64,000 nucleotides of DNA. It comes from Podarcis bocagei. Taxonomy: Eukaryota. The notes beneath the pieces are model-generated. The model searched no databases. It was not told the origin of the DNA and was given only the letters and a program-made list of their open reading frames with translations. The position numbers were made by a program, and so were the translations under genes. The stretch lies in the NCBI GenBank assembly GCA_964188305.1, contig OZ076901.1; one strand, written 5' to 3'. Below are positions 30,861 through 62,357 of the stretch, in pieces; the stretch's first letter is position 1, and every line of letters begins with the position of its first letter.

Positions 30861-33121
30861 AACTCCGCTGAAAAACCTCCAAGGAAGGAGAGTCAGTCGC
30901 CTTCCGAGGAAGTCCGTTGAACAGCTCTTACTGTCAGAAAGTTATTCCTAACTTGAATCCATTGGTTTGTGTCCTACCCTCTGGAGCAGGAGGAAACAAG
31001 TTTTCTTCATCTTCCATGTGACAGCCCTTTTGATATTTGAAGATGGCTATCCTATCTGCTCTCACTCTCCTCTTTTCCAGGCCAAACATCCCCAACTCCC
31101 TCATACTCTTCTTACATTATACGTCAAAGTAAGCACTCCTCCTCCCTGTCTCTGGGTTTCAGGAGCTGGGGGTGATATGCCAGGAGCTGGTTTCCTTGTT
31201 GCTTTTCTGTAGTTCTCACTCTCCTGTGGAGAGGGAATGGCTTCTTTACTTGCAGTGTGATCTGGGCCTTTGTACATGCTAAGCTGGTGGCGGTGGCCTT
31301 TGTTCCTGGGGGCCTTGTCCTGCTCACCGTCCCAAAACCCATTAGTTCGAGCCAGGCCACCCAGTACATTTGCAAGGTGGTGGGGAGAGAAGTCCATAAA
31401 ATGAACTTTAGCACAGGGATTCCTCCATAGCCCAAGCTGCCCCATTGATGGATGGAGAAGCCAAGCCATGCGTCCTCCCAGTGGAATAGAGGAGAGGCTG
31501 TTCCAGCAATTCTCATCTAGTAACTTGACTTGGGAACAGACTGGCTTGTTTGACTGATGTCCTGCTCAGTGCTTGGTCTGCCCAGGGTTAGTTATTTAAT
31601 TGCATTTGATTGTGAACTTCTTCTGAGTGTCTCATATTGAGGCAGAAAGCGGGATATAAATATTTTCTGATTGATTAAATAAACATTGTAAATAGTCTTA
31701 CAAAAGTGACTAGTCTGAATATCATCATTTTTTACTAGATTGCAACCCCCACCCACCCTAGTAGCCTCTGTCTCCACACTGGCCTCAGAGGAGGGGATGT
31801 GTGCCCTACCCATGTTGATAATTCCATTTGTAAAATTATATTATCCCTCGGTGACTGTCCTGGCCTTCTGTGGCAAGGAGTCCATCAGGTATGTGGTATT
31901 GTGAGAGCAGGTTTCCTAAGCCTTGGGCGCTGGTGATGCTGTATAACCAGAGAGTGAGTGATTGTGCCCCATTTGTATCCATCCCTTGCACAAATGTCTT
32001 AGGAGCCTTGGTACCTGTCTGCTAAGCCTTTGGGGCAACTGCAGTGAGAAGATCTCGCTCTTGGCTCCCCTAAGACAGCTTTAGATCTGTAGCAAATCCC
32101 TTCTCCCTTCAGTGAAAAAGGAGATTCAGCGCTGCTGGAGTTGTAGGCTGGGTGGTTTCTGAGACATGGCAGCTTGTGTGAAGGCTGAGGCTGCCACTTC
32201 CTTACATTTACAAGTTTGTGCTTCCCTGTCTGTAATAAAGGAACCCAGGTCACATTGTGTGGGCTCAGCCAGTTGTTTCAATTTTGATCCTGGACTTCCA
32301 GCTCATGAAACAGTTATAGGATCCGCAAAGCTCACCTGTTAAGAGGTTGATATGCTCTCCCTTCTCCTACTGTGCCCCCTTGCAAAGGTTGCAACACCTG
32401 CATGGAGGATTCTGGTTGCACCAGTTGCTCTTAGAGGCACCTGCCTGTGAATCTCAAGCTGCTGTCAAACCTTTTGCAAATGTGATTGGGTTTGCCAAAG
32501 AAGGCTGCCTCTCCTTTAATCGAAAAGGAGAATTAAGACAAGCAGAAAGGAATAACCCACACAGCCTGTATCTTGATGCATTTCAAGTGCTTTTCAGTTA
32601 ACTCAGAAGTCCCTAAGAAGTGACATCTCAAATTATAGCTGGGGACAATACTGGTGATGGGTTAATAATGACAGGTGAAGGGTGGGGGGGGAGGAGCCTT
32701 AATTAAAGGCTGGTTCAGAAAGGAAGGCACAAGGAGCTAAGGCAATGTTGTCAGATCAAGTTTTTCTACACTGGAAGAATGTAGGAGGTCACTGCATTTA
32801 AAAGGGCCTGCGGAAGTCACTATCCCAAGGCTGCAGCCTTGCACTGCCTGTAAAGCAAATGCTTATTTCGGGTGGGGTGGAATTACCTGAAAAATTATTG
32901 AGGGTGAGTATCATTTCATTTGCAGCACCCGAGGTTAAGAGAATGGGAATTTGGAGGCATGATTGCTTAGGAATCCTTTGCCCCAGGTTTCCCCTTGTTG
33001 TGGTTCCTCGGTCTGTCTTGCCTGGGACCCAGAGGGCTCCCCGCCCCCATTCTGCAGACTCTTAACCTCTACCACCTTTTTCTCTCCCAGTCAGGGGTTT
33101 AGGTTCTCCAGCGTGGCAGCC

Positions 33122-33160
33122 ATGGCCTTTTCATCACGATTTGCATTCTGGGAGCAGAAG
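33122..33160 (+). CDS. MYO18A: Putative alternative (gamma/muscle-type) start exon MAFSSRFAFWEQK; exon starts at 33091
   Basis: Branch-like cttaac (33061), polypyrimidine tract, tctctcccag acceptor at 33090 and Kozak GCCATGG. Peptide resembles the recalled MYO18B start MAISSRLALWEQK. Expected donor reads AAG|ggaagt (non-canonical). Confidence 0.7.
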
Positions 33161-34998
33161 GGAAGTCTCTTTGCTATTGTGGTTCTTGGCCTTCCCTGCC
33201 TCCTCTCTCTCCCTCCCCACCCCCTTGCTCTCCTAAAACGGGGCACTTTGCACATGAGTCGTGGCAGCACATTGAAAAGGGGACCAGGTTGTGCTTGTTC
33301 CTGGCATAGGAGGGAGTTGGCTTCGGAGCAGTAGAGGTCATGTTAGAAATGTGGCAGGAATGCCAGTGGTCAGTCCTAGGCCCCCTCTTGGCTTGTGTGA
33401 AGAGCAGACGTCCCTGGGGAGAATCTGTTCTCCTCCTTGCCATTTCTCAGAGACTCCAAATGGACTGAACAAACTGGCAGCCACTCCCTCCAAGCCCTTT
33501 GCATAGCAACTGTGTGGAATAATCTGCCTGTGAAATAACTTGTGTGCTACTAACTCCACTGTATATTGGAGCCTTTGCCAACCCGGTGCCCTTGAGATGT
33601 TTTGGACTACATTGTGCTGGCTGGGGCTGATGGGAGTTGTAGTCCAAAACACCTGCAGGATACCAGTTGGTAGAGGCTGATATGTTGAAAGTACTGTGTG
33701 ATCATAAGTGCTGTTACTGTAAACCTGGGTTTGACCTCAGTGTGGAGCTCTTAATATGATAGTTCGTGCCATCTGTTGACTCATATCTCCACACCTAATT
33801 TATAGCTCTATTTCTGAGCATTTTAAGCTTTCCAAGTGCTTGAGTCTCACAAGGAGTGAGGAGCCCCCAAGAACCCCAGGTTTGCGGTAACAATGTGTGT
33901 CCCCCCCTCCTTCCTTCCTGCCCCATCCTCCCCTTGCACCAATGCATGGCTTGTGTGGTTTGAGAGCCAATGGAACCAGCACCTCCCTGCACACAGTGGT
34001 GTTAAAATGCACTTTTGACTGACAGGTTACTGTGATGTCTTCACAATCCAGGTTTGGAGTAATACGTCATTGTGTCGTTGTGTTACCAACCTATCTACCT
34101 GTTTGGTGGGAGTGTATCACATTGCAGCCTTGCTGCCAGAGTTTCTGTTCCAAGTTTGCTGTTCTGTGTTTGCTGGGCTTCAAGGTTGCTAGATTGGGGA
34201 GTAAGGGTGTGGGTGATGAGAAAGTAGCAAAAATGTGTAATTCTTGTGATGCCAGGTTTCTCTTGATCATGGTGGTTCCCAGTTGCTGTTGCCTCCTCAC
34301 CCTTGAGGCACCCCACCCACCATTGCTCTTGCTTTGATCCTAATGGAATATATGTTGTCATCTTCTATGTCCTGCAGAGATGAACTTTTTACCAACTTCG
34401 GCTGAGTATACACATTCCTGGCTTAAAACATAGCAAGGCTGCTCTTTTTCTCAATTCAGATAAAAGTTGGATGTTTTGGTTTTTTTGAGGGGGCGGAATT
34501 TATTTATTGAAATATTTATATACCACTCTTTCATAAGATATATCGAGGTGGTATGCAACCTGCAGACTACAATAAAACTAGTAAAAGTATTCATTAAAAT
34601 GTAATTGAAAATATTAGTAGATATTTCCTGGTGAAAAAGAGAAAAAGACCCCTGCATCAAAATGTCGTATTTCATAAGAAACCACAGAAGAGATATGAAT
34701 TGTGGGTAAGGTGATGGGTGTCTGCTGCTTCCCAACCCAGTGGTGGGAGTCTACTGGATGTAGAGTTTATGGGAGTCTGTACACAGCCTTTCTCCAGCAT
34801 GGGCTTTCTGCCCAGTCGCAGCTTAACACAAGGTCCGCTGGGAGCATCCTGACGACTTCAGTGCTTGTGAAAAGCTACCATCATACTTGTGATATGGACT
34901 GCCCGGAATGTGCTAGTGAAAAAGTGTGTGTGTGCACGTTTCAACTGATTGTCCTGGCGTGAATGAAATATTTCCTTATCTGTATTTGACTTCCTCAG

Positions 34999-35055
34999 GT
35001 GAAGGATGAAGACAAACCTTTAGCAGCGAAAAAAAACGAGAGAGAGGATGGGGCT
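34999..35055 (+). CDS. MYO18A: Putative gamma-type exon VKDEDKPLAAKKNEREDGA
   Basis: ttgacttcctcag|GTG...GCT|gtaagt; 57 nt, phase 0 to 0; VKDEDK continues the MYO18B-like IREEDK. Confidence 0.72.
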
Positions 35056-38000
35056 GTAAGTCCGTCTGGGTTTGGGCACTGGAGGGGGTGGTGGTATTTG
35101 CTTGGGCTAACTTCTAGGCCAGGACAAGTTTGTGTGTGACGTGGGTCTTGCCCCTCCTTCTTTCTCTTGTGTGCAGTCTCCACGGTGTGTTGTAGGGCCC
35201 ACCATTTTTTTGTGTGGGATCCTAGAGCTATAAGTGTGAGAGGGGGCTGGCAGATAATCTTCACATTTTGTGTTGGGACTAGGGATGGGGAGGAAGGAAT
35301 TCGATTCAGTTCTCATTTAAAGGTGAACTTAACTAAATTTGCCTCATCTGAAACATTACCACAAGTGGAAATGCAGCAATCCTTTGAAATTTGCACGTCT
35401 CTGAATTTTGCAATGAAATTCTCCAGCCAAGGCATGTGTATAAAAATGCTTATGAGAGAGCATAGATTACATACAGACAGACATCATTTTATTTGTATGC
35501 TGCCTTTCAAATCATGCTGAAGGCAGCTTACAACATGAAAAAATATATAATTACAACATTACAAAAGTAGTCACCAACAATAAATAGAACATCAAAAATA
35601 CACAATTGAGCTGAACAATTTTTATATAATCAAAACACAGATACAAAAATTAATATAGCAGCAACAGCCCCCCCAAAAAAGATTAACAACAACAACAACA
35701 AAAACACCACTTACCAAATGCATTTTGTTAGGGGCCTTTGCAAAAATGTTTGTATTAGGCAAAATTAAATATGAACATGTGTATATTGAGAGATGTTTAC
35801 ACTGAAACGCTAATGAATTTCCACGAAGACTTTTAAAAATAAAAAAGCACCTTGCAAACTGTTACGGAAAAGTGGTGAAATGAATTTAAGATTGCGAGAA
35901 AGAGAAACCAAAGCTGACAGATTCTTCCATTCTTAGCTGGGAAGCAAAGCGGGTTGCGCCAACACTGTTGCCAGTATTTTCTTTTATTTTCTTCTGTGGG
36001 CACAGGGATTTTTTTGGGTGGGGTGGTGGGGTAGGAAAGAGTTGCAGAGAAAGAGAAACATGCACATGCGTGGTGAAAAACCGTGCCCATGTGGCATGTG
36101 GAGTGTAAAAGGTGAGTCCTGGGTCTGATAAGCACTGTGAAGATCAGCAGATTTTCAGTCCTATTTATTTTTATTTCATAAAACTTGTATACTGCTCGAT
36201 GGTAGGAAAAACCTCAAAGCAGTAGTGCTAGCCATGGGGCAGAACGACACTTCCTCTGAGCCCATGGGATGTAGAAAGCAAGTGACTCGTCCAGGTTCCT
36301 GCCTGGCCTTGTTGTTGATGCTGACGAGAGACCCCTAATGGAGCCCATTTCCAAAGCCACCATCCCTACCTCTCTCTGCCTCCCCTGTGCCCAATCATAT
36401 ACACTTCGGGTGGTGGGACCTGCCAGTTCCCAGAGAACCACTCCCCTGTGTGCGCTTTAAGCTGGGTCTTTGTTAGGCTGATCATTTGGTGCGGCTTGAA
36501 AGCTATCGCTGTGGGAAGGTGCCCCCTGCACAGCTCTGGCCTAGTTCTAGGATAATGGATGGTGGCAGGGACAAAGAAGGAGGGATCCTTCTGTAGCCAT
36601 CAGGGCTGGAAACCTCCCCCTCTGGGACAGGCTTGTAGATGGTCTCAGGCCCTTTAGGCTCCTCTCCCACCCCCAGCTTTTTCCAGACTTTTTATTCCTT
36701 GAGCTGCCCCCCCCCCCGCAGCTCTTCTTTTGGTGGTGGCTGGGTTTCTCCTGATTTGTGTTATTAATTTAACAGCTCCCTCAATGCACATTTTGGTTGG
36801 GCCTCAGTTTTAAACAACTGTGATTATTTGGTGCCCAGAGCATCTCTGCTATCCTGTTTGTAGCTGAGTGCCTCTGCCGAGAGAAACCCCTGTTTAAACA
36901 CTCTGCTACTGGTGAAGTTCATTAGTTTGTGTTTCATTTGCACCCTGCTTTTCCTCCCAAGGAAGCCAGGGTAGTACATGGGTCTCCCCCATTCACACAT
37001 TTTGTGCTCGCAACAGCCACCCTGTGAGCTTTGTGGCTGAATTAGAGATTTGAACTTAATTTTTCCTGGTCCTAGGATGAGCCCTTTGGTTGCTTGTCAG
37101 CCTGCTCTTATCTTATCAGGTATGTGGTGGTGTCTCAGCCCAGGGTACTGGTAGGGGGGAATAGAACAACAGAGTCATAGAATTGTAGAACCGGAAGGGA
37201 TCCCGAGGGTCATCTAGTCCAACCCCCTGCAATGTAGGAATCACAACTAAAGAATCCCTGACATATGTGCCACCAATATTTGGCCTTGAATAGCTAGGAG
37301 AAATGTGAGTGGGTGGGCAGAAGTATCTCAGACCCTCTCTCGTCTAGACCTCCAAAACGTTTGTGAGCCCCCCAGTTCAAACCATTGGAAATGGTTTCAG
37401 GAGCTTATCTGTTTTGATCCATATTCAGGGCTCTGAATATATGAAGAGCCACAGAAAGGTCACAGCTCAATGGTAGAGCAACTGCCTTGCACACGGAAGG
37501 TCCCAAGTTCAATCCCAGGCATCTTCAGGTAGGAGCGCCGGCTGCCTGAAAGTTCTAAATAATAATAATAATAAATACATTTTATTTATGCCCCACCCTC
37601 CCCAGCCAAGACCGAGCTCAGGGTGGCTAACACCAAGTATAAAAACAATTGATTAAAATACAACTTAAAAACAAGATTAAAATACAACATTAAAATGCAG
37701 CCTCATTTCAGTAGAAACTCAAATCAAATCAAATCAAAGAGATCTGCTGCCAGTCAGTGTATACAATACTGAGCTAGATGGACCAATCATTTGGCATGGT
37801 ATAAGGCAGCTTCATACATTCCTAATATGCTCCTGTTCTGCTTGTTAAGAGCATTGGCATTGTTGTTTTTTGTTTTAATATATTAAAGGTACAGAACTTA
37901 AATTACAGAGTGTTTGGTGTGGGGGAGAGAGCAAACCCTTTTGTGATGGCCCCCTTAGCTGCCATCTATAAAAGGCTAACAGGAAGAAACAGTTTGCTTA

Positions 38001-39033
38001 ACTTGCACGTTTTGCACAGGTCGTGGCACTTAGCTTTGCAGAATTTGGGTTACCATTGATATAGAATTTTGCGGAGTCCTGCTCGTAGCCTCTTTACCTC
38101 AGGTCTTTCTCTGCCCTGGTCAATAACCTCTTCTCATTTCAGTGTTCAAAAGTGGCACCTTTCTTGCCGAGCCATGGCTCAGAAGGCGAGCTGGAACTTT
38201 TTAATGGCGGCAGCACCCCTGCTTCCACTCTCCCCAGCAAGCCTTTTGCTGTAGCGGTTGAAGCTTCTCCTGGCCTTGGGCCATCCATCCTGGGTCTAGT
38301 GCCCAGTGGCCATTAGCTATGCTGCCTGCCGCCTCCTCTTCCTTTAGCTGCTCCTGAAGACAGACCCAGAAGCTTCCCCTTGCTCAGCTGCCCTGCTTTC
38401 CTCCTTTGTTCTAAAGCAAGGAGCCAGCTGCTCGGCTTTGCCTACTGGTGTCTTCCCTCTCCCTCTTTCTCTTCATCCTGTACCCTGGCAGCCTTCCCCT
38501 TCTGCTGCAGCTTTCCTTTCTCATCTTGGGGCTGCTGAGTGTTGCCTTCGCCCCCTCGGCAGAGGCCAGAAGCTCGTCCAAGAACGACAAGACCCGCTCT
38601 GTTCCGGAGAGTACAGAATTGATGCAGTGGCTGCTTTTTGGCTTGAAAGAAATCTCTTTAAGGAAGGGCATCTGGAGGGGAACAGCCTTGACTGGCGCCT
38701 TCCCTGCTGCTTTTTAAAAAAATGCCACCCTTTTCCTGACCCACTTCTCTTTTTAGGCTGGGGCCTGAAGGGTAGGGTTTCCCCTCCCCCCAACCCCCAA
38801 GGTGAGTTTATCCTGGGAAGCTGATTCCTTGTACTTTTGTTTCCATCCAGTCTCACTGCAGAGCTTTGGTCTGTGCTGCCGCTACACTGTGGGTTGAGAT
38901 GAGTCTGCAAAGTCTTGGCTGTGTGGATGGATACTTTACGAAAAGGACTTGTGGGCAGAGGGCTTTGCAGGGATGTGGGAGGGGGGAATCAGTTATTTTC
39001 TCATTCCCTTTGGAAGTAACCTTTCCTCTAGAA

Positions 39034-39264
39034 CAGGGTTTCCCAAACTTGGGTCACCAGCTGTTTTTGGACCACAAGTCCCATCACCCTTAGCTAGCAG
39101 CGCCAGTGGCATAGCTGTCAATGTTTCCCTTTTTTTAAGGGAAATTCCCTTATTCCGAATAGGATTCCTCGCAAGAAAAGGGAAAAGTTGACTGCTATCA
39201 GTGGTCAGGGATGATGGGGATTGTAGTCCAAAACCAACTGGAGACCAAAGTTTGGGAAACCTTG
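39034..39264. mobile_element. hAT MITE with a nested ~88-bp inverted-repeat element (39111-39198)
   Basis: TIRs CAGGGTTTCCCAAACTT / AAGTTTGGGAAACCTTG; 8-bp TSD CTCTAGAA. Confidence 0.88.
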
Positions 39265-40151
39265 CTCTAGAACATAGGAAGCTAGTCCAGCAACAACTCG
39301 GTGACCCAAGGTAGAAGAAGGTTGATCTACGCTGACTGACCACAGTTCTCCAGGGTTTCAGGCAGGGAACACTTCTAGATGCCTAGAGATGCCACTGGGG
39401 ATTGAACCTGGGACCTTACGCATGCAAAGCAGATGCTCCACCACTGAGCTACGGAAGCTCAAGCTTTTATCCTTGGTGGGCCTAACCCTGCTGCCTTCCC
39501 CCAAACTTCTGAGGTTGGAGCAAAAAGACTCAGAGAGCTAGCATAGAAAGGGGCTTGACTCTTCCATACGTACTGTCCATGCATTTTTTCCATATAATTT
39601 TGGGCATAACTAGTCAGGGTTTTTCTTAATGCACGAGTGGCTTGGACATAAGTGGGCCCTCTGTATACCAGAGGTGATGCTAACACAAGCAAAGATGATG
39701 AGTTGGGTTGTAGCCACTATGCTGTGTATAAATCCGTTTGCAGTAGACTCCTCTTCCGTTCCTTTTGGCGGCATGTTCGTTTCGCTTCCAGAACCCCACC
39801 TGTGCCCTCTTCCTCCAGCTCAGCCAGTTGCTTATTTGCAGCTGTTCGTTTTGATTAGCACTCTCTTCTGCCCACTCTACACAAACTTTTCCTGGGCTTT
39901 TTGCATGTCAGAAGCCAAACTAACCCTCTGGATGGGCAGGGCTGTCCCTGCTGTTGGGAAGGAACCAGGGATCCCATTGGATTCTCTGCTTGGGAAATCT
40001 GAGGAAGGCAGCTTCTTCCTTGTTGTGTGAATGCAAACCCTTGAGTGGGGAGGAGGAGTGGAAGGGCGCCTGGCTGGTCGCTGCTGCCTTACCATGGCAT
40101 TGTTTGGGGGCCTGCTCTCCTCACAACATCTTAATGTATCTGCAACTATAG

Positions 40152-40964
40152 TTGGATGTCCAGAGTGCAGGAAAGGAGGACCCCCGGAACCCCCGCAGCC
40201 CAGAGCCCCCAGAACGCCCTGGGAGGGTGAAGAGCCCAGAGCCCCCTGGGAAGGTGAAGAGCCCAGAGCCCCCTGGGAAGGTGAAGAGCCCAGAGCCCCC
40301 TGGGAGGGTGAAGAGCCCAGAGCCCCCCGGGAAGGTGAAGAGCCCAGAGCCCCCTGGGAGGGTGAAGAGCCTAGAGCCACTGCTCAACGGGGACACCCAG
40401 CATTCCTGCCCTCCCGGCCAAGCCATGAATGGCCTGGAGGGCTCCCAAGGAGCTGGCTCATCGACTCAGCCCGAGCCACCTGCTGACGATGCCCAGGGCC
40501 TCTCCCGCAAGAGAGTGGTGAGGGTGGTGCGGAAGGTGGTGCGGAAAGTGCTTCCAGGGGAGGATTCTGGGGGCTCCAAGGAGCCGGGACGAGATATCAA
40601 GTCCACGGAGCCAAGCAAGAAGGAGGAGAAGCCTCCTGCCAAGGTGCAGCCCCCACCTGCAAGGGTGCTCTCTCCGTCCCCTCGGCCACCCTCTTCCTTG
40701 AAGTCTGAGCCCAAGGAGGCAGCCCCCAAGGATGACCTCTCAGTGGGGCTCAAGAGCCTGATGTCGAGAGGCAGGACCAGAGAGCATCGGCCCCGTGCCA
40801 AGCTGCCAGAGAAGAAAGAGGAGGAGAAGAAGCCCCCAGAGAAGACAAAGACCCCGCCTCTTGCGGAAGGGAAGGCCACAGACACAAAGGGGAGTCAGGC
40901 GCCAAAGGGGCCTCCTGCAGCTCCAGCGAAGCTGGCAATACAGAAAGCCACCACTGCGAATAAG
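40152..40964 (+). CDS. MYO18A: Putative gamma-type large Pro/Lys/Ser/Glu-rich exon (271 aa, LDVQSAGKED...KATTANK)
   Basis: Branch-like cttaat then ctatag|TTG; AAG|gtacta donor; 813 nt open, phase 0 to 0; GC-rich third codon positions typical of coding sequence; longest intronic ORF. Confidence 0.8.
40218..40379 (+). repeat. Coding 27-bp minisatellite, 6 copies, PG(R/K)VKSPEP
   Basis: Near-identical units cctggga(g/a)ggtgaagagcccagagccc, in frame within the 813-nt exon. Confidence 0.95.
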
Positions 40965-42032
40965 GTACTAGTGCATGAGCACCGCAGCTTGGCGGGCGCA
41001 CGAGGCCAGCATCTGAGCATGTGCAGAGTGCCTTTGTGTTCCTCACCTGGGCAGGGCGGGCAGTGAACTTTGGCTCCCAGAGTCTGGAGGGGGTCCTCAA
41101 TGCATGGAGTGTGCTGCTAGTCCTGCCACAGCGAGGCTCTTCTTTCTCTCGGGGAGTGTGTTGTGCTCTCTCTTTACCCCACCCTGTGTCGCCCCCACCA
41201 GGCAGCTGTTTTGGTGCTTAGGGCAGCTTCTGATTGGTGTGCTTAACAGCCCATGTGCCACTTTGACCATGCCATGAGGCTCCTCGCCTTCATTTCAAGC
41301 ACACATGAAACCCATTTCTGTCTCTTCGAGTTGCAAAGATGAGCTTGAACATGAGCAGGTGATTCTGGGTGGAAGTCCAAAAACTGGAGGACAGCTGAGC
41401 AGGGTTTGTAAGCTGTCTGTGGAGGGTCTTTAATAGTTTCTTCCCCTCAGGGGAAATCTAAGCAGATTATATCAGAGTGTATAAATATCAGTATTCAGGT
41501 TGCAAAATTTGGGTTGAAAAGTGGAGCTTTCCAGCATTTTAAAGCTGTAGTGCTTTTTAGATTCATTGAGGAGACAGGAGTGGAGAAGCCATAGCATGGC
41601 TGTGTTCTGCATCCACAGGTGAAGGCATTAATATCAATTGCTGGAAACCATAGGAGGTGAGAGCGCTTGAAACCTGGAATGCCGGTTTCCCACTGTGAGA
41701 ACAGGAGGCTGGACTAGATGGGCCACCGGCCTGATCCACCATCAACACCCCCTGCTAAATTTAACCCTAGAATAAACATTGGAATTAAATGTATTCAGTG
41801 AAGATGGGCCCAGAGTGACTCCACTCCTTTATTTTTTTGTTTGTTTAACAAAATTTATATACTGCCTGTTTGTAAGTAGAACCTCTAAGCAATTTACAAA
41901 AATCCCACTTGTTATGCCTGTCTTCAATCTAGCCTGAGCTTCATTGCATCCACGTGACTCATAAGGGGTGTGTGTGTGTGTAAGCATGCATCACTGGGTT
42001 CCTTAAATACAGTTATGACCTCTGTCATCTAG

Positions 42033-42119
42033 ACTCCTTCCAAGGAGAAGCCCCAAACAGCAAAGCCAGCAGAGAAGTCTCCGCCTTCCCTGAGTCCTGG
42101 AGAGGAAACCATCCCACAG
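42033..42119 (+). CDS. MYO18A: Putative gamma-type exon TPSKEKPQTAKPAEKSPPSLSPGEETIPQ
   Basis: ctctgtcatctag|ACT...CAG|gtgtgt; 87 nt, phase 0 to 0; same composition as the 813-nt exon; TGCATG 20 nt downstream. Confidence 0.7.
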
Positions 42120-44093
42120 GTGTGTCTTGAGCTGGAGGTGCATGTAGGGCCCCCTTTGCCTGTGTGCATTGCTGTTGCTGTTGTGCCTTTGCTGAAGGCC
42201 TGTGTTCTGGGGCAGGGAGAAACCTGGGGTGGTGGTGGTTGTGCAGTGAATATGTGTGTTTATTTATGCAAAGTCTCTGGCGACCAAAGAGGCTCACCAC
42301 ACAGATGTCTGTTACCACATGGGGTAGGGGTGCGCAGAATTCAGGCTTGCGGAATCAACTTCCTTCTTTTACTAGGGCTCTGTGATCCACCAACTGGAGC
42401 CAGGTGCAAAAGAGCTCCTAGCCTAGCAATTTGTTTTTGAGTACCACCACAACTCAGCTCAGCTCAACTCACAGCGCTTCTGAACAAAAATCATTTCCAG
42501 GCTACCCTGATATTATTTTCAGCCCTATCAGTTTGGGTGGCATTGGGAAAGCGGGGTGGGAATTATTTCGTTGCTTCTATTGCTAAACCTTTGGGAGTCA
42601 GAAATCTTTGCTGAATTACTGCAGATCATTCTGAGATCTTCCCACCTCTGGATGCACAGATGTGTAGGCACCTCCCAGATTTCTCTCTGCGGAAAAGTTT
42701 TTTCCTGTTCTGTCTGAAGTGTCCTCCTTAACTTATGTTGGGACACACCTACCTTGACTGACGTAGATTTGTATGAAAATGTAGGCCACTGTGTTACTAA
42801 CATAACAGAGCACATGGTTTTGGCATTCAAAGGCTTTCATGTTTGTGTTCAGAGGGTTTTTGTGATCAGAGTGTTGTACCTTTGCCCCATGCAACATGAA
42901 CCTCACCTGGGTAAACGGTGCCTGATTCTCAGCACTCTAAAGTATGGCCTCTGGGCTGGCAGGAGGAGGTTTGAAGTATAGGGCCAGAACTGGGTATATA
43001 TTCTCCTAAGCCAGACACTGGATTGGTCAGGTGGCTTATAGAAGCTCTAATGAGCAGCTAAGGTGGCATGGTCCATTTCTGCTTGTACTCTTGCAGTGTT
43101 GGCCCACCTGGGGAAAGCCATCTCTTGGCTGCAGCTGCCTCTTAGGGCTGCCAGCTTTTGATTTCAAAAACTCCACTCCCTGGAGAATGAGGGACAGAAC
43201 CCGGCTGGCTTTGGGATTGTGGCCACTAGCCCCCAAACCCTAAACTGAACAACTAACTGCCTTCATTACACATTTTTAGGTGCTAGAGAAAAGCATTCTT
43301 CTTTTCCCAGGCCTTTGGCTAATTAAATAATCTATGGCCTTTTAAAAAGTTTATGTCTTGGGGGGAATATTGTTTTGGTTTTTACTACAGTATATGTATT
43401 TTGTGTTTTTATATGGTAAACCACCCTGTGATCCTCGAATGAAGGGTGGTATAGAAATGTAATAAATATTTGTAATAACTTTGCCTGCTTGGCTTTAAAC
43501 GTTGCATTGGCATTACAGACACCAGCATTGGCTATCTAGCCATTGGTCGAGATTTCCCCACCCCCCCTAGTCCAGACCAATATTTATTGATTCACATTTA
43601 TATCTCACCTTTTTCTCCAAGGAGTTCAAGGTGGCATATGACATTCTTCCCCTCCTCCTTCAATCCCCACAACAACCCTATGAGGTAGGTTAGGCTGAGA
43701 GGCAGTGCCTGACCCCCCCAAGGTCAACCAGGGAGCTTCACGATCGAGTGGGGGATTTGAACTCTGTTCTCTACCAGGTCCTGGTCCAACACTCTTAACC
43801 AGTTGGCAAGACAGCTCCACCTAGAGTGTCATGATGCTTAGGTTCCAGTGGTCCTGCCTTGCTGATCTCCAAGACTGTTGGGTGGGTCTTGGGCAAAGTG
43901 AGCTTGGCTGGTCCCTGCCATTGCTGGAGGCCACAGAAGACTTGCTGAGGGTTCTGCTGCCTCTGTCTTTCCTTGTTGCTGCTTGTAGGTGAGACACCCT
44001 TCTCCTCTTCGCTGCTGGTCCCTTGACTTTACAGCTTACCTCTCTCTCTCTCTCTGTCTCTCTTTTTCTCTCCTCTCTCCTTTCCTGGGTTAG

Positions 44094-44129
44094 CCGGAGC
44101 CTGCGACCACCACGGCTGCACTCCCCCAG
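44094..44129 (+). CDS. MYO18A: 36-nt cassette exon PEPATTTAALPQ
   Basis: Long pyrimidine tract then gggttag|CCG...CAG|gtactg; phase 0 to 0; same size and position as a 12-aa cassette recalled upstream of AKTEEQ in mammalian MYO18A. Confidence 0.75.
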
Positions 44130-44868
44130 GTACTGTACCCCAGCGCGCCGGAGGACCCCCTTCTATCTCCCGTCTGCCTCTGGGTTGATGTGTGTGCTCG
44201 CGCCACGTGCTGGAGTGTAAGGCTTTATTCACCTCTTGGCATCCGGCCTGGGCCTCCCCTTTCCATCATGCTAGACAAGAGAGAGATGACTTGTTTGCAC
44301 ACAGCTGGGCGGGCGTTGGGGAGGGAGGGAGGGAGGGAGGGGGCAGCAGCAGGGTGGGGCAGGGGTGGAAGCCTCCATGTCACATGCCAAAGCTATTGCT
44401 GGCATCATGGGAAGTGGGGCCGCTTCTCTCGGAAGGGGCAAAAGGCCACCTACTTTCAGCATCCAAAAGTGACACTGTCCGGATCCTTCCCCTTCCCCTG
44501 ACGGATCAATCCGGGCCCCATCTTAGAGCCCTGGTGAGTTGCTTTACCGTGGAAATGGGACAGAGAGCTCTGGGTGACACAAGTGAGGGTTGGGGAAATG
44601 GGGGGGGGGAGCCCAGCCGTTTAAGGAGGAAAAAACCCCAGGGATCAGCTATCGGCCTGGCCTGGCCTGAAAGTCAGTGGGTGGGTGGGGAAGACTCATC
44701 CTCAACTTGATGATCGTTTCTTAGCCCTCAAGAGTCATTAGCAACAACCTTTCTCTACTTTCATGCTGCCCGCTGTTCGTGTTACCCTGCCAGCAGCACA
44801 TGTAGGCAGCGCTTCTGCAGAGTAGCCTTTGGGTCCCTGCCCCAAGGAGCTTACCAAACTACCTTTCA

Positions 44869-44988
44869 ATGGAAAGGGAGACAAACAAAAGAGAAAAGGC
44901 CAGCAGGGAGGAAAATTGCATACAGGTGGACTATTTGGGGGCGCGGGGTGAGGACCAAAGGGGAAGAGCAGAGACCAGGACCATGCAG
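44869..44988 (+). CDS. MYO18A: Candidate short-isoform (beta-type) first exon ending ...RTMQ (ATG at 44869 or 44983)
   Basis: ACCATGCAG|gtgagc is a strong phase-0 donor, in frame with AKTEEQ; G/GC-box-rich region upstream at 44306-44370. Confidence 0.4.
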
Positions 44989-47078
44989 GTGAGCTGGAAG
45001 GCTCAGCGGTCTGTTTTCCAGGTGCCTCTGGGCACTCCCAAGCAGAATACGAAGGCAAGAGACACCCTGTGTTGTTTCTTTTCAGGATCTGGCACTGAAG
45101 GGTGGGTGGCAGCAGCATCCAGTGGATTCAAACATGGGGCTTCTGTTTTAACGATAGTGACTAACAAAAGTTGGGGGAAGGCTTGTAGCTCTGTGGTGCA
45201 GAGTGCCCACTTTTTGATGCAGAAGCCAGCATCTCCAGGTAGGGCTGAGAGACGCCCTACCTGAAGTGCTGGTGAGAGGCTGCCAGGCAATACTGAGCTA
45301 GATAGGCCAGTGGGTCGGACTCAGTATAAGGCAGCTTTCTGTGATTGGCCTGTGTCTCAGAATCCACCCTTGGTGTCCCACCTATTATGATGTTACAAAG
45401 GTGCACACATTTGGTCCATTAGTGGTGGCACCCTTTCGCTTGGGGGCAGCTATCCCTGAGGGTTTGGAAGGTTGGCTCAGCTGCGACCTTCATTGCTGCA
45501 GGGAACCTGCTCTCTTTATATGCTGCCAAGTAGACTTTTCCTCTCTCCACGCCTTAGTTTCCCTTTTCTCGTGGTAGGGCTAATAGCATGGCAGACAGGG
45601 AGACTACAGAGCCAGGTGTTCCCTTTTTGTGGGGGGTGGAGGTAGTATGGTGCTGCTGGTTCCCCCACCCACCCTGATCTCGCCTGGAGGCGGGCATCCA
45701 GATTAACCTGGCCCACATTGCTTCCCTTCCTGTCAGCTCCCACAGGCTCAGGCGGACGATGCCCCAGCAGCTGCTTTTGGGCTGGCCTCTGCTGTCTCTC
45801 GGCCGCAGGTTTGGCTGCTCCATTCACAACTCTTGTTGCTTGTGGGCGTCTGTGGCTTGAAGCTTGCGGGAGGGGAAGGGTTGTGCTTGGTGTGGGTGAA
45901 GAAAGCTGCCTTGGATTTGTGTGTGGTTCCATGAAGGGGATTTCTTTTTCTGAGTCCGTCCTCCATAGATGGTCTCTGGATCAAGGGAAGCCATTATAGA
46001 TATAATGATGTACCTTTCCAGGGATTGTGGGTGAGACACGTGTTGTCATCCTCATCCTTCTCATGCTCATCCCTATCCCCATTCTTGCAGCAGTCCCATA
46101 AAGCCGGTTGAAAGAGCCCACCCAGTGCACTTTCAGGGTTTTTCTGGGATTTGAACAGGTGACCCTATTCTGCTTTACTACCCCAACAGAATTCATTCTT
46201 GGATGGTTTCTCCTACCCAACCCCACACTTCGAGATGGCCTTCCAGTTGTTGCTTCCCCAACTCTCCTAGCTGCAAGGGCCTGTGACCATAGGCCAGCCT
46301 TTCCCCAACCTGGTTCCCTCCTATTGTTGCTGAAGTACAACTCTCTACATCCCTGGCCTTTGGCCAAGCTTGCTGGGGCTGATGGGAGTTGTGCTTCTGC
46401 AGCATCTGGAAAGCCAAAGGTTCCCCATGTAAAGGGCCCCTGGATTACTTCGTCCATTTCAAGCTGGGGTTTTTTGCATGCTCCATTCACCGTTCTCCTC
46501 GCCTTGTTCTGTCTGCACCTCTGGAGTTTTGATTGTGTGTGTTTCGGTTTGGGGAGGGGGGGCAGTGCCGCATGCCGCATGCTCTTTGCTCTTTCCATGG
46601 AGCTGCCTTGCTCGCTTTGGGGAGGGGGGGCTGCACATTTAACCCCTCTGGAGGTTGAACCCAGCCGGCCTGATCAGAGTTGAGCTTTGGTAGTGGTGAT
46701 GGTGACGGTTCTGGTTGTGACATGTCTGAGGGAGGGGGAGTCTTGTGGGTTCTGTGCATCAGGCAGGAGAGCAGGTGGGCCTGTGCAAAGTGCAAGATAG
46801 GAGCAGGAAAGTTCTGTGAGGAAGGCTGTGCACGCACCAGACACTTAAAGCACACAGCTTCCCTAAAGGATCCTGGGAGCTGTAGTCCTGTGACAGGTAA
46901 ACTTCATTTCCCAGGATTCGCTGGGGGAAGATGTGTGCTTTAAATGTACGGTATGTATGCAGCCTAAATGGAGCTGGGCTGAAGTGGGCAGAACTCCCCC
47001 CCCCCCGCTCTGTTCTGTCTGAGGGCCTGTGTAGTGACTCCAGTTGTTTCTTGTCCACCCACCTCCCCATCCCCACAG

Positions 47079-47166
47079 GCCAAGACGGAGGAACAAATTG
47101 CAGCCGAGGAGGCCTGGTATGAGACGGATAAAGTGTGGCTGGTCCACAAGGATGGCTTCTCCTTAG
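47079..47166 (+). CDS. MYO18A: MYO18A exon [29 protein letters not shown] (first common exon, SH3-like N-terminal motor region)
   Basis: ccccacag|GCC...TTAG|gtaagt; 88 nt, phase 0 to 1; recognisable MYO18A peptide. Confidence 0.96.
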
Positions 47167-48155: not shown

Positions 48156-48601
48156 CATAGTTAAACTATAGAGCTTGCTCCCACAGAGGCCTTGATGGCC
48201 ACCAACCTGGATGGCTTTAAAGAGGATAGACAAATTCATGGAGGCTCTAGAGGGTTATCAATGGTTACCAGCCACAAGGGCTGCGCTCTGCTTCTAGGGT
48301 CGGAGGCAGCAATGCTTCTGAATGCCAGTTTTTGGAAAATGCAGGAAATGAGAGTGCTCTTGTGTTCGGATCCTGCTTGCAGGTTTCCCATGGGTACCTG
48401 GTCTGCCACTGTGAGAACAGGATGCTGGACTAGATGGCCATTAGCCTGATCCAGCAGGGCACGTCTTTCGTCCTGGAAAGCATTTTGTGTTTGGTTGGGC
48501 CACTAGGTGGCAGCATCACATTACCTCTGAGGTTTCCCTCCATGTGTGTTGTGTCTCTTTCATACAACTGACCCTTGTGTCCTGCTTCCCTGCCCACACA
48601 G

Positions 48602-48711
48602 CAAGCCAGCTGAAGACTGATGCTGCCGGCCTTCTGCCTGAGGGGAAAGTCAAGGTGAAACTGGACTATGATGGAGCTCAGCTCGAGGTGGATGAAGACG
48701 ACGTGGAAAAG
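48602..48711 (+). CDS. MYO18A: MYO18A exon (A)[36 protein letters not shown]
   Basis: cacacag|CAAGC...AAG|gtaggt; 110 nt, phase 1 to 0. Confidence 0.95.
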
Positions 48712-48812
48712 GTAGGTGTGGCGGCTGCGCCAGCTGCATCTCGCCTGCAGCCAAAGCTGGATTGACTCCTTGTCCTGCCCAGGTTAATGACATTCCCTCT
48801 CTCTCTGCCCAG

Positions 48813-48989
48813 GCCAACCCTCCGTCGTGCGACCGCGTGGAGGACCTGGCCAGCCTTGTGTATCTCAGTGAGTCTAGCGTCCTGCACACGCTCCGCCAGC
48901 GCTATGGCGGGAACCTCATTCACACCTACGCCGGGCCCAACATGGTGGTCATCAACCCTCTCAGCTCTCCATCCATGTACTCTGAGAAG
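48813..48989 (+). CDS. MYO18A: MYO18A motor exon [42 protein letters not shown]...SMYSEK
   Basis: tgcccag|GCC...AAG|gtgagt; 177 nt, phase 0 to 0; classic myosin head start motif. Confidence 0.97.
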
Positions 48990-49696
48990 GTGAGTGTTGC
49001 GGCTGGGTAGGATGGAGCGGGTTGGCAGAGCGGGCGCTCATTCATTTCTTTGCTTGATCCTCACTTCGTCTGTATGCTGCTTACCCAAGAGGAAAGAATC
49101 CTGCTCAGAGCAGTTTACAACAAATAAAAGAGGAATGTATCCCAGAATCGACCATTGCAAAAACAATTAACTAATAAATAACATAATGAAACAGCAGCGT
49201 GATAGCAAATATAACAACATACAGGGGAGGAACACATTTCAGGACTGTAAATATAACAGGATTTCATTAACCACACAATACTTCCTGGCTGTAGCAGAAA
49301 TAACAAGGGAGCTTGACAGTTTCACCTTGGTTCTAGAAACACCCTCCCCCTTGGTGGGTTTCTCACAGTCCCTCTCCTGCTGCAACTTGCAAGGCTTCCA
49401 GAAGTAGGGGGTGGGGTAGCTGTAAATGCTCCCTCCCATGTTGTTCCTCATTGTTGGGGCTGGCCATGACTTTGGATATTCCCTTGGGGAGAGGAGAGGG
49501 GGCAATGGTCTTTGATATCCCCCCAGTGGAGACGATTGAAGGCTCAAAGTGCCCCTGTTAAAGCCACTCTTTGCTCCCCAGGTGGGACTGCAGAGTTCTG
49601 TTATTTACTTAGAAAATGCATAAACTGCTTAGGAATGTAGAAAGCTTCCTTATACTGAGTCAGACCATTGGTCCATCTAGCTAATTATAGTCTGTA

Positions 49697-49926
49697 CAGT
49701 CATACCTCAGGTTACAGACGCTTCAGGTTGCGCGTTTTCGGGTTACGGACGTGCCAAAACCCGGAAGTACCGGAATGGGTTACTTCCGGGTTTCGGCGCT
49801 AGCGCATGTGCAGAAGTGCTAAATTGCGCTTTGCACACGTGCAGAAGCGCCAAATCACGACCCACACATGTGCAGACGCGGCACTGCGGGTTGTGAACAT
49901 GCCTCCTGCACGGATCACGTTTGCTG
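49697..49926. mobile_element. Tigger-like MITE (degenerate right TIR) inserted in a tRNA-derived SINE
   Basis: TA|CAGTCATACCTC...CTG|TA; CpG-rich, with internal inverted repeats; SINE sequence resumes on both sides. Confidence 0.6.
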
Positions 49927-50972
49927 TACTGGCTGGCAGGGGCTTTCCAGGGAGGGCATCTTTCCCAGCCCATACTTGAATGTGGGACCTTCTCCATGCA
50001 AAGCAGCTTTTCTTCCACTGAGCTACAGCCCTTCGCTTGATTAAAAACTTTTTATAAATAAAAAGTTATCCAAGTGGTGTACGAATAAGATAGGAGAACA
50101 CAGCTGAAACCTGAAGTGAATTAAAAACATGTAAAATAGTTATCATTGAAACAAATTTGCATAGAACCATCAACAAAGGCAAAATCAATAGAACCTTTAA
50201 AACAGATGTGGGTAACTTAATGGCTTTTCAAAGCAAAAGAGTGTTCATTAGACACCTAAAACACTGAAATGAGAGTGCCTGTCTGGTGTCAATAGGCAAG
50301 GAGTTCCAAAGTGCAGGGCTGCCCCACAAAATGACTGACTCCTCACAGATGTAGTGAGGAGAATCTTCTCTGCAGTGTGTCACTCATGCTGTTTGTTTGT
50401 CTGTGCGTACTGAAATTTATAGACCACATTTTTATTGGTAGCTCAAAGAGATTTAAAAATCGACATCTGGTTAGTGTTGATCAATAGACCAGATTGATAA
50501 CATGGCGTGATAGCAGCCCAGCTGGGCAGCATCCCTAAATCCATCATTAATTCTTATTTAGTTTTACACCCCCCACTCTTGAAATACATTATCCGGGGGG
50601 GGGGGGTGACGGCGGTGGCTTACAATAAAGCTTTAAAACCACAATTGCCATTAGATATTTTAGGATGTATATCCTTGTTTCATAATCATTTTTGTAAGCA
50701 GCTTTGAGTTTGTTTTCTGTTGTTAAAGTGTCTAATAAGAAGAGAAGACCCCCTTTTTGAACTGGACATGCTGTTGGGGGCTGAACCTGGGACCTTCTGC
50801 TTCCAAATAGATGCTCTACCACTGAGCTACAGCCTCTCTCTCCCCTTCTCTCTGGGGCTCCTGTTTCCCAGTTCCAGAAGCCATGCCTGCTTTAATCCTC
50901 CCAGCCTCTCCTCTCCCCCTTGCCCTTTGGCTGCCTCTCTGATGCTGCGCTTAATGCTGCCGCTTCCTCCAG

Positions 50973-51183
50973 GTGATGCACATGTTCAAGGGCTGCCGCA
51001 AGGAGGACACCTCCCCCCACATCTACGCCGTGGCCCAGGCCGCCTACCGGAACATGCTCATGAGCCGCCAGGACCAGTCCATCGTTCTGCTGGGGAGCAG
51101 CAGCAGCGGAAAGACCACCAATTGCCAGCACCTGGTCCAGTACTTGGCCACAGTTGCTGGCAGCTCCGGGAAGGTCTTCTCAG
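50973..51183 (+). CDS. MYO18A: MYO18A motor exon with P-loop-like GSSSSGKT (VMHMFKGC...[16 protein letters not shown]...KVFS)
   Basis: cctccag|GTG...TCAG|gtgggt; 211 nt, phase 0 to 1. Confidence 0.97.
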
Positions 51184-51479
51184 GTGGGTGTGTGGCCAGC
51201 AGTGGCCTCGGCTCCTTCTAGAGGCCCTTGGGGGTGGGGGCAGCCCTTGGGAAAGCAGGTGAAAATGAGGACATTTCTACTGAAATGATGTTCAAGGGAA
51301 GCCATGCCACCAAACAGCAAGGAGCACACCAAGCTCTCGTCCTGTTTCTTTAACAAAATAAATGTCTTTGTTGGAATTTAACAATTATTTTTATTAGCAA
51401 AGAAAAGAAAAGAAACCAAGAGTAAACAAATTCAATTTTACAGCAGGTTGAAAGCAGCATATCATGAAGCTTACTGCTC

Positions 51480-51790
51480 CAAAACACTATGAAAGATGCC
51501 AATTTTTCCATAAATCTGTTAGGCTGGTTCGTATGTATTCTTCTGTGGTGTTAACTTAATCATAGATCAAATTTCCTCAGTACATTTGGATATAGAAGGA
51601 GACGTGCTCCCCTCCCTCCATTTAGCTATGACAGTTTTAGAAGCAGTTCTAAGGTTAACAGTATTTTTCAAAGTAACATATTTTAGATAACCAAGTAGAA
51701 ATGACTAGGATGTACAATGTCCTAACATAACAGAGATATTGGCCTGAACAGATTTCCAGACTTTATATTTGAATCCAATTGATTTTTGTG
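51480..51790 (-). mobile_element. Degenerate L1-like ORF2 3' remnant
   Basis: Minus strand reads ...TASKTVIAKWR..., AT-rich, similar in layout to L1 ORF2 ends. Confidence 0.4.
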
Positions 51791-53213
51791 TGTGTGTTTT
51801 GAAAGCAAACAAGTGAACAATATACAAAACAAACAGGATGTGGTACACTAACCAAAGGAAAACATAGCTCCAGCATTCCAACGAAAACGCAAGAGAGTTG
51901 GAAGTCATTTTACAGGCTCACAATAAATAGCACATTACAAGCCTCCTGTGCTGTTTTTGTTTGTCTGTTTGTTTCAACATTTGTTTCAAGTCAGTGATGC
52001 TTGGGAATTGTATACAGCTACGTAGATTTTTGAGAGGCAGGTGGAAAAATATTGACTCCATTGTTGGGTCACATACATTATGAGAGGGTACCACATCCCA
52101 TCAAATCCCCCCCTTCCTGTTTTTAAGGGGAGGCCCTTCAGGGACGCTGAACTCATTATCCGACCATCGGTCCATCTGACTCAGTATTTTCTGTGCTGAC
52201 TTACAATAGCTCTTTAGGGATTCAGGCAGAATCCGTTCCTGCCCTACCTGGAGATGCCATTGTTTTATTTTTAGACCGATTTGAGCAATACTGAAGACTA
52301 CAGCTCCCATCATCCCTAACTACAACTAGAGACCCAAGTTCGAGAAACACTGGACAGGCTTCCCGTTGGGTCAACTGGTTGGCCACTGTGAGAAGAGGGT
52401 GCTGTGCTAGATGCAGCAGCCAAGCTCTTCTTATGTTCTTCTTAAGAGGAAAGATATTGCAGATGGAGGAAGAAGGAGGTGGACTTTGCAGATCTCGCAG
52501 AGAACCTCAGAAGAGCCTTGCAGCTGGATCAGGCCTAGGGGCCCATCTAGTTGACCATCTTCTTCTCACAGTGGCCTGTATGGGAATCTCTTGCAAAGCT
52601 GAACTGAGCTGGTGTAATGGAAGAGGCAAGCGGATCCTGAACCGACATGCCCTGGGCTACCTAAGTCTCTCTCCTATCCCTGTCCCTCCACTCTCAAAAT
52701 CCTGCTGCAACCGCCCTCCGCTTACTCTTTGTTGGAGAAGTGCTGACCCCTGTTGTTGTTCTCTGGTTTACTGGTTGCTGTGTGCTGCTGTAGTGCCCCT
52801 TTTAGCCTGTCTCTTCAACCTCCAGCAGCCAGGATCCTGTCTTTTCTCTCTGACTTGACAGCTCCTCTGAAATCTGACCGTATTCCTTTCCGGATGGGTG
52901 GTGCCTGATTGACACTGTCAGCACTTCATTTCACAGGGATGCTAACTATTTGACACTCAAAATGTCCCTTGCTTTGAGTTGAGTAACTTGCATGGCACAG
53001 TGCCACACAGTCTGGGGGGTGGCAAATCTGCTAAGGGGTGATGCAGTCAGGTAAGGGGTCCCTCTCGGCCCCTTGAGATGATGACCGGTCTATTGGGGTT
53101 GTGGGGGTGGGGTGCACACACATGCTTGCCAGTTCATCTACACGTATGTGAGCGTGCCCCCACGCACAACAATGGTTTGCCCCTGCATGCTTTTCCTTGC
53201 TTTGCCTTGGCAG

Positions 53214-53356
53214 CGGAGAAGTGGCAAGCACTGTACACCATCCTGGAGGCCTTTGGCAACAGCGGCACGAGCCTGAATGCCAACGCCACCCGCTTCTCAC
53301 AGATAATCTCGCTGGACTTTGACCAGGCTGGGCAGGTGGCCTCTGCCTCTGTGCAG
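53214..53356 (+). CDS. MYO18A: MYO18A motor exon [47 protein letters not shown] (switch-1 region)
   Basis: ttggcag|CGGAG...CAG|gtgaga; 143 nt, phase 1 to 0. Confidence 0.96.
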
Positions 53357-54079
53357 GTGAGAGGGTGTGTCTGTGTGTTGCACACACTTCTAGCAGGTTC
53401 TTATTATGTTCTTGCATTCTTGTATCCCTGCAGCAGTAAGCACTGGTAGTTGTCTTATCCTGAGTCAGACTTTTTTGGTCCATCTAGCTCAGACTTGTCT
53501 ACTCGCAGTCGTTCTCCAGGGTTTTAGACAGGGGTCCTTCCCAGCCCTCCCTGGACTGAACTTTCTGGGACTTCCTGCATGCAAAACAAATGCTCTGCCA
53601 TTGAGCTATCACCCTTCCCTCAAAAATAAAGTGAAATTCCAGCCCTCATGGTGTTGAATTAAAGGCTGGTTTAAATAGGAATGTAGAAAACTTCCTCCTC
53701 TGGAGGCAGACCATTGGCACATCTAGCTCATTATTGTCTGCACTGACAGGCAGCTATGATCTAGGGTTTCATGGGGGGATGGTATTTCTCAGCCCTATCT
53801 GGAGATGCTATTGGGGATTGAACCTGGGGCCTTCTGCATGCAAAAGAGGTTCTCTGTCACTGAGTTACAGCCCTTTTTGCGTTTGCAAGTAATAGGGGGC
53901 TTGTAGGCCACGCTGTCATGGCTGTGATGGTCCCGAGTCTCACAAAATTAGCCAGAAGTGAGAGTATGACAGAAGGTGGGGTAGGAGCTGGGCTTCTGCA
54001 GGAAGTTATTTGGGCCAAAGTGGGAACCCTCTGGCCTTGTACCACGCAGACCTTTTCTCTCTCTGATTGCATCCCTCAG

Positions 54080-54180
54080 ACGATGCTGCTGGAGAAACTC
54101 AGGGTTGCCAAGCGCCCCGCGAATGAGGCCACCTTCAACGTGTTCTACTACTTGCTGGCCTGTTCAGACAATGCCCTCCG
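54080..54180 (+). CDS. MYO18A: MYO18A motor exon [34 protein letters not shown]
   Basis: ccctcag|ACG...CG|gtaagg; 101 nt, phase 0 to 2. Confidence 0.96.
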
Positions 54181-55193
54181 GTAAGGAGGCTGCTGCAGCT
54201 CCCAACTCAAGGGACCAGCGCCTGCCTGGTTGCATGTGTTGCAGTGTCCACCTGGCTTAGGGCTTGGTTGGAAGGAAGCAAGCAAGATAGCTTTTTCAAA
54301 GGTGGCTTTGAAGCCTACTTGAAACCTTCAACTGGTCTGAAATGCAGGGCCCAGATTACTGGCTGGGGTTGCCTTGGGAACTGGAGGCCAGCAATGCTTC
54401 TGAATACCAGTTGCTGGATGCCACTGGAGGGGAAAGGGCTCTTGCACTTGAATCTTGTTTGCAGATTTCCCACAGGTATCTGGTTGGTCACTGTAAGAAG
54501 AAGATGCTGGACTAGGTGCATCACTGACCTGATCCAGCAGGCTCTTCTTACGTGTGTCTGGCCTCCTGTGTTTCTTTCCCGCTGTCCAAAATTGTCATGA
54601 AAATGTCCTTTGAGGTGAGACAAGTCTCGCAGCTCTGCCTTGGGAGGGTTTGTCAGCCTCTTCAGATCTGTTTTGGATATATTCAAATGCCTCTGTGCAT
54701 ATAAGTAAGGAAGGTCTCTCCCCACTGATTAACCGCAGCCCAGCCAGCCCTGAAGTGAGGGGGCAGGACAGTGCAGACCAGGGGCCTTGATGTCCTGAGT
54801 GGTTTTAGGAATTCTGTCTGCTTCTGGCAAATGGAGCTTTTGTTTTTGCTTTAAAAAGATTTTTATTTATGTGCAAAAACTACAACATCACATAAGAAAA
54901 GAAAAACGAGGACAATTCAAACCCTTTAGGTCTTGGATGTTTTGTGATAAAACATGGGCCTGATAATCTTGTAGTTATTGGCTGGGGTAATAATGTGCAA
55001 ATCATTTCAGTTTCTAAGCATCCTGTGGAGGCAGCTGAACATAAATCAAAATCCACAGGGCTCCTGCAAACCAAGGCAACCCTTGTTTTAGTGCAGGGGG
55101 TGGGCTGGGGGGAGGGCAAAGTGGGCCTTTCTGAATTGGGATGCTGCCTCCGGCGCTCTCTCTTGACTCTGTCCTCTTCCCCTCCACCCCCAG

Positions 55194-55257
55194 GACGGAG
55201 CTTCATTTCAACCACTTGGCAGAAAACAACGTCTTTGGGATTGTACCCCTGTCAAAG
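55194..55257 (+). CDS. MYO18A: MYO18A motor exon [21 protein letters not shown]
   Basis: cccccag|GACG...AAG|gtaagg; 64 nt, phase 2 to 0. Confidence 0.95.

Positions 55258-62282: not shown

Positions 62283-62287
<5 letters not shown>

Positions 62288-62357
<70 letters not shown>

Follow-up and report, generated by a model that had tools for sequence, protein, structure and literature searches.

The 64,000 nucleotides (nt) of Podarcis bocagei DNA analysed here (assembly GCA_964188305.1, contig OZ076901.1; hereafter the window) contain the alpha N-terminal exon and the motor-domain exons of MYO18A. Between them lies a set of small exons encoding a proline-rich module that is very likely the lizard orthologue of the N-terminal extension of striated-muscle Myo18A-gamma. 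A sequence-only reading of the window had proposed that the squamate gamma isoform is encoded here, and this interpretation is supported by the place of the module inside MYO18A and by orthologous N-termini that run into the motor in mullet and paddlefish. The same reading described the module as hidden, which does not hold in general: mouse Myo18A-gamma and its Myo18B-like first 19 residues had already been published. What is new is the presence of the isoform in squamates, and for myosin biology the result is confirmation, not discovery. A conserved GG or GA splice donor, a probable extra exon and a missing motif add modest new points. The mouse isoform is reportedly the subject of Horsthemke et al. 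(2019, J Biol Chem 294:7202).

Exon structure of the module

All features of the gene described below are on the plus strand. The module comprises five exons, E1 to E5, with coding lengths of 39, 57, 813, 87 and 36 nt in the window sequence. Each is open and divisible by three, and direct reading of the sequence bears out the five phase-0 segments that had been proposed. E1 (33091-33160) follows an acceptor cag^T at 33091 (carets mark exon borders) and consists of a 31-nt 5' untranslated region and, from the ATG at 33122, 39 coding nt for MAFSSRFAFWEQK. E2 (34999-35055; 57 nt, phase 0) encodes VKDEDKPLAAKKNEREDGA, ends at a gtaagt donor and is contiguous with E1 in the transcript-like contigs described below. 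E3 (40152-40964; 813 nt, 271 amino acids (aa)) is the Pro/Lys-rich core and holds the conserved helical motifs QGLSRKRVVRVVRKVVRKVLPGE and DDLSVGLKSLMSRGRTREHRPR. It is followed by E4 (42033-42119; 87 nt, phase 0), which encodes TPSKEKPQTAKPAEKSPPSLSPGEETIPQ between AG/GT borders read from the sequence, and by E5 (44094-44129; 36 nt, phase 0), a 12-aa micro-exon with AG/GT borders that encodes PEPATTTAALPQ. AG acceptors and GT donors are thus present at E2 to E5, the donor of E1 being exceptional.

Joined together, E1 to E5 encode 344 aa in frame with AKTEEQ at 47079, the beginning of the first exon common to alpha and gamma (47079-47166), which shows 87-96% identity to fish, sparrow and camel. 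The motor-domain exons (48601 to 62539) lie 3' of this exon. The 344-aa arm is rich in proline (18%), lysine (13%), glutamate (10%) and serine (9%), and a Pfam search with E3 matched no family, as expected of the PDZ-less, Pro/Lys/Ser-rich N-terminus that had been described. Its size is similar to that of the alpha N-terminus, again as had been claimed. The alpha-specific exon (123-1124) encodes 334 aa with a KE-rich stretch and a PDZ domain (Pfam E = 3e-10), ends at a phase-0 donor GAT^gtaagt at 1124, and is 83% identical to residues 1-321 of alligator P0005 by tblastn. All of the gamma exons, including a candidate sixth exon (33091-45808 in total), fall within the 46-kb intron between this KE/PDZ exon and the exon at 47079.

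E3 also contains a tandem repeat at 40208-40378, detected with Tandem Repeats Finder, in which a 27-nt unit encoding SPEPPG[KR]VK is repeated 6.3 times. Other vertebrates have scattered KSPEPP motifs and no regular SPEPPG[KR]VK array. The array looks like a lineage-specific expansion.

Link to the myosin motor

Orthologues of the module are found in full-length fish proteins. Mugil cephalus "unconventional myosin-XVIIIa isoform X9" (P0013, 2243 aa) and Polyodon spathula isoform X17 (P0030) begin with MAFSSRF, continue through the E3 motifs and VKTEE[EQ]IAAE, and then enter the motor domain. They share with the lizard the exon order, the start, the E3 motifs and the joining sequence (VKTEE[EQ] in fish, AKTEEQ in lizard), whereas the fish E3 regions are longer than lizard E3 and about 38% identical to it. 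More generally, NCBI "unconventional myosin-XVIIIa isoform X.." models with the gamma start run into the motor and tail domains. A region search recovered at least 120 fish isoforms of gamma type; with the mullet protein as query, the 120 matches listed are from fish only and include no tetrapod full-length gamma model. Since the orthologues run into the motor, and the motor exons of the window follow the module, we identify it as a gamma-type MYO18A N-terminus.

Automated annotation tells a different story. The module is named "basic salivary proline-rich protein 1-like" in Pseudonaja and "neurofilament heavy polypeptide-like" in Passer (both NCBI), and "proteoglycan 4-like", "diacylglycerol kinase kappa-like" and "formin-like protein 16", among others, in birds and mammals. 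Separate, unrelatedly named genes of this kind are annotated in the snake, several birds, a lemur and the black rat (P0003, P0006, P0203, P0207, P0220, P0227, P0271). Taken at face value, such stand-alone models, whose stops are reached by reading through the E4 or E5 donor, would make E1 to E4 a small gene of their own, outside MYO18A, for a proline-rich protein that is secreted or structural. We regard this as very improbable. In full-length isoforms from fish, paddlefish among them, and in the alligator models the module continues into AKTEEQ and the motor. Every exon is in phase 0 and the donors are conserved. No Pfam family is found in the module, no signal peptide is evident by eye from the start MAFSSRFAFWEQKVKDEDK, and the names are automatic labels driven by composition. 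In addition, the gamma protein has been demonstrated in mouse (PMC11112018). The mis-splitting in sauropsids was likely caused by two things in combination, the non-canonical first intron and read-through of the small exons that follow. Because automated annotation repeatedly splits the module off as a falsely named proline-rich gene, MYO18A-gamma is under-annotated in reptiles and birds.

Conservation across vertebrates

The lizard exons were compared with loci from a snake (Pseudonaja textilis), sparrow, camel, black rat and two teleosts. In each of the six loci, E1 is followed after 386-2338 nt by E2 and further on by E3 and the exon common to the isoforms. The E1 peptide is identical at 13 of 13 residues in snake, sparrow, camel and rat; the MAFSSRFAFWEQK start exon that had been predicted for other sauropsids is therefore present in both the snake and the sparrow. 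E2 is 68-79% identical to its counterparts in sparrow, snake and another squamate. Using E3 as the query against 1.84 billion representative proteins, phmmer returned 74 matches, with vertebrate homologues at E = 3e-66 to 1e-29 and MYO18A N-termini orthologous to the module at E = 3e-66 to 1e-15. The genuine matches are vertebrate, and many of them start with MAFSSRF[AS]FWE[QK]K[VI]K[DE]E. The start MAFSSRF[AS]FWE[QK]K[VI]K recurs in more than 100 vertebrate MYO18A models, full-length fish isoforms that reach the motor domain among them. The small 3' exons are also conserved. The snake counterpart of E4 (L004 14073-14135) is used in XP_026578565.1 and retains the GTGTGT donor, and snake E5 aligns at both splice sites with the same 36-nt length and an open frame. 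The 12-aa counterparts of E5 read LDPAASASAPSQ in birds and LDPEAASPAHSQ in camel and squirrel.

The five exons of the proposed chain stand, but the chain is probably not complete. A candidate sixth exon, E6, is found at 45746-45808 (63 nt, phase 0), where AQADDAPAAAFGLASAVSRPQ is encoded between the borders cacag^G and CAG^gtttgg. Its homologues are sparrow L002 6513-6563 and, in alligator MYO18A models, the exon immediately preceding AKTEEQ (AQGQADDAPAAMVGPASAASLPQ). Judged from these alignments, it is probably a sixth exon, either constitutive or cassette.

A second difference concerns the motif LSPxEEAxxRL[EM]RIF (L002 5412-5516, L003 24703-24789, L007 ~12250). In sparrow, camel and rat it occupies a separate exon, and teleosts have it as well. 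A profile of the motif reaches E ~1e-16 in the sparrow, camel, rat and teleost loci; it gives no score in lizard 35056-47078 or in the snake locus, the latter of which contains gaps. The lizard is without LSPxEEAxxRLERIF and the snake apparently likewise. Lizard E4 retains only "SLSPGEE" and looks like a truncated remnant.

The E1-E2 junction and the 5' end

Four small RNA-like runs, each from a different organism and study and found via E3 words, supplied contigs that were aligned to 32600-35400. In all four runs a joint is present at 33158>34997 with three ambiguous letters. It represents the same mRNA as 33160>34999, so the first of the predicted junctions is found in RNA-like contigs of four related lizards. 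In two of the contigs (1048 and 1032 nt) E2 directly follows E1, and the sequence runs on for another 867-891 nt, which by length would suffice for E3 plus 54-78 nt. Chance open reading frames are ruled out as an explanation of the module by the conservation and the RNA evidence.

The contigs start matching at 33090/33091, and their 29-93 further 5' letters lie nowhere in 32600-33089, which shows that E1 is internal and preceded by a non-coding exon. In six of seven species an AG acceptor precedes the ATG by 25-31 nt, the rat (..ag^ctgcc..) being less clear.

The contigs also bear on how E2 is reached. Alligator KYO28235/KYO28234 read ..IRQSGDT^VKDEDK.., followed by E3-like and E6-like sequence and then AKTEEQ, and some fish models (P0109, P0113, P0144) have both a PDZ domain and the gamma region. 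The lizard alpha exon has a GT at the matching place (~1055-1060; ..SGET^gtacgc). From such an internal donor of the alpha exon, E2 to E6 could also, or mainly, be spliced in as cassette exons after the PDZ domain to give a PDZ-plus-proline-rich hybrid. We consider this unlikely, since the alligator and fish evidence consists of gene predictions, the lizard contigs that reach E2 come from E1, and mouse gamma has no PDZ domain. Moreover, a hybrid could exist alongside gamma as a further isoform instead of taking its place.

Several points weigh against assigning the lizard module to MYO18A-gamma. The NCBI models of the snake and of birds are truncated, ending by read-through past E4 or E5, and stand as separate genes. 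The gamma-specific C-terminal extension and the 3' end of the gene lie outside the window. The stretch between the acceptor and the ATG of lizard E1 has no in-frame stop, and the start codon is for that reason set by conservation; the sparrow does have an in-frame stop upstream. Direct RNA support in lizards covers E1>E2, which leaves the junctions downstream of E2 and the use of E6 as predictions, and the four runs, whose tissues are coded, are only guessed to be RNA. We infer that the remaining junctions are used in the lizard and that the isoform is specific to muscle.

A conservation search for the 5' non-coding gamma exon had a sole yield, a 125-nt block of 76% identity between lizard 13161-13285 (20 kb upstream of E1) and sparrow L002 319-430 (2.6 kb upstream); no counterpart of the block turned up in the loci of camel, rat and snake. 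The block contains GGAATG (M-CAT-like), TTTAAATAAAA (TATA/MEF2-like) and CATATTTTGG (CArG-like). It is a candidate element for muscle regulation or a candidate gamma promoter, suggestive but short of proof.

Within the E1-E2 intron, a palindromic repeat of ~55 nt at 33585-33670 is covered to a depth of 3,000-14,000 in each of the four runs and has loose ends at either side. There is a weak Rfam mir-5408 match on both strands (25.6 bits versus a gathering score of 90), and the E1-E2 interval gave no Rfam match at threshold. The repeat looks like a dispersed hairpin or an element resembling a miniature inverted-repeat transposable element (MITE).

A conserved non-GT donor in the first coding intron

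The intron between E1 and E2 (33161-34998, 1838 nt) is non-canonical, of the GG..AG kind, and reads AAG^GGAAGT ... ttcctcag^G, its acceptor consisting of a pyrimidine tract and then CAG. Given the three ambiguous letters of the joint, the possible intron ends are AG..TC, GG..CA, GG..AG and GA..GG, and never GT..AG, GC..AG or AT..AC. The first letter of E2 is A in fish; this rules out GA..GG and leaves GG..AG or GG..CA.

GG donors are very rare (PMC4176328), a reason to suspect that GT is the true donor and that GG reflects a mistake in the assembly or the reads, or else a private allele. The probability of this is negligible. An unspliced contig of a second lizard species (organism B) spans 33132-33636 with four differences from the window, none of them at 33161-33162; this species therefore has GG and yet splices there. 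The donor AAG^G[G/A]AAGT is present in seven of seven genomes, with conservation ending after +6: the camel has GA and the six others GG. Gene models of four further fish read through the donor, three as WEQKGS and one as WEQKES. A single G>T change would make a perfect donor and is seen in none of the seven genomes and none of the four read-through models. GT as the real donor is already refuted by these cross-species data. A squirrel model that reads WEQK-EKEDK looks like a forced canonical splice.

The E1-E2 intron is a U2-type intron with a purine at +2 and the consensus at all other donor positions. Similar introns are known: conserved GA-AG introns in FGFR1-3 and a GG-AG intron in CPSF3 (PMC4176328) have, like MYO18A, a purine at +2 in an otherwise U1-consensus donor that is kept vertebrate-wide, and a normal acceptor with a polypyrimidine tract and CAG. 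The FGFR site relies on a GT 6 nt upstream, whereas MYO18A E1 has no upstream canonical GT, the only nearby GT being at +5/+6. A parallel closer to home is found in human MYO18B, in which an intron ~19 kb into the gene (hg19 chr22:26157098-26159197) is annotated as U2-like GA-AG and listed as used in heart and skeletal muscle (PMC4176328 supplement, Parada 2014). Its GA-AG ends parallel the GG/GA donor of MYO18A gamma, and it may be paralogous to the MYO18A E1-E2 intron. We found no paper in the literature that describes the MYO18A E1-E2 intron, the MYO18B GA-AG row of the supplement being the sole trace. It is conceivable, though we lean slightly against it, that the purine at +2 is ancestral to the class-18 "MAxSSRxxxWEQK" start exon and has been maintained by selection since before the MYO18A/MYO18B duplication as a weak site tying use of the exon to muscle splicing. 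Unchanged for >400 million years, the GG/GA donor provides a clean natural case of a conserved non-GT U2 donor.

Predicted structure and a proposed mechanism

The snake orthologue was modelled with AlphaFold2 using 21 sequences (mean predicted local distance difference test score (pLDDT) 52). The chain is predicted to be mostly disordered, with three short helices. Helix 1 (residues 5-19, the E1/E2 module) has low confidence. Helix 2 (residues 103-117, pLDDT ~80) carries a basic RKxVxxVRKVVxKV motif, RKRVVRVVRKVVRKV in the lizard, and helix 3 (residues 179-192, pLDDT ~72) carries LSxGLKSLMSR, which is LSVGLKSLMSR in the lizard. The invariant columns of alignment A3 are confined to the motifs of helices 2 and 3.

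We propose that gamma transcripts would start from a promoter inside the gene, within the 46-kb intron that follows the KE/PDZ exon, and would consist of a short non-coding exon, E1 with the start codon, E2, E3, E4, E5, possibly E6, and the common exons. E1 is joined to E2 across the U2-type intron with GG in place of GT at its donor. As a result, the PDZ module would be replaced by a disordered proline-rich arm of ~344-365 aa, whose conserved helices would be the MAFSSRFAFWEQKVKDEDK start, the basic RKRVVRVVRKVVRKV helix and LSVGLKSLMSR. If mouse is a guide, this arm would bring the motor-dead myosin to thick filaments, at the A-band. Clues to which parts of the arm may carry sarcomere targeting come from its three conserved helices and from the loss of RLERIF in the two squamates checked, the present lizard and a single snake.

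Comparison with mouse Myo18A-gamma and MYO18B

Mouse Myo18A-gamma is without KE and PDZ, is proline-rich and localises to the A-band (PMC11112018), and gamma arises from an internal start site (PMC11285346). According to the same 2024 review (PMC11112018), the first 19 aa of mouse Myo18A-gamma are highly identical to Myo18B, and the remainder of the Myo18B extension has low identity to gamma. A 19-residue module common to MYO18B fits the near-invariance of E1 and E2 from teleosts to mammals, the MYO18B half of this comparison resting on that review. A 40-residue region search for MYO18B sequence returned eight candidates, all of them MYO18A. The lizard differs from mouse gamma in the lineage-specific 27-nt x 6 SPEPPGKVK repeat of E3, and the lizard and apparently the snake differ from mammals, birds and fish in having no LSPxEEAxxRLERIF. 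At the rat locus the E1 peptide is identical to that of the lizard. The mouse isoform, like the lizard module, is PDZ-less, proline-rich and encoded within Myo18a, and it is joined to the common motor, as predicted for the lizard. MYO18B and Myo18A-gamma are both found at sarcomeric A-bands (PMC11112018).

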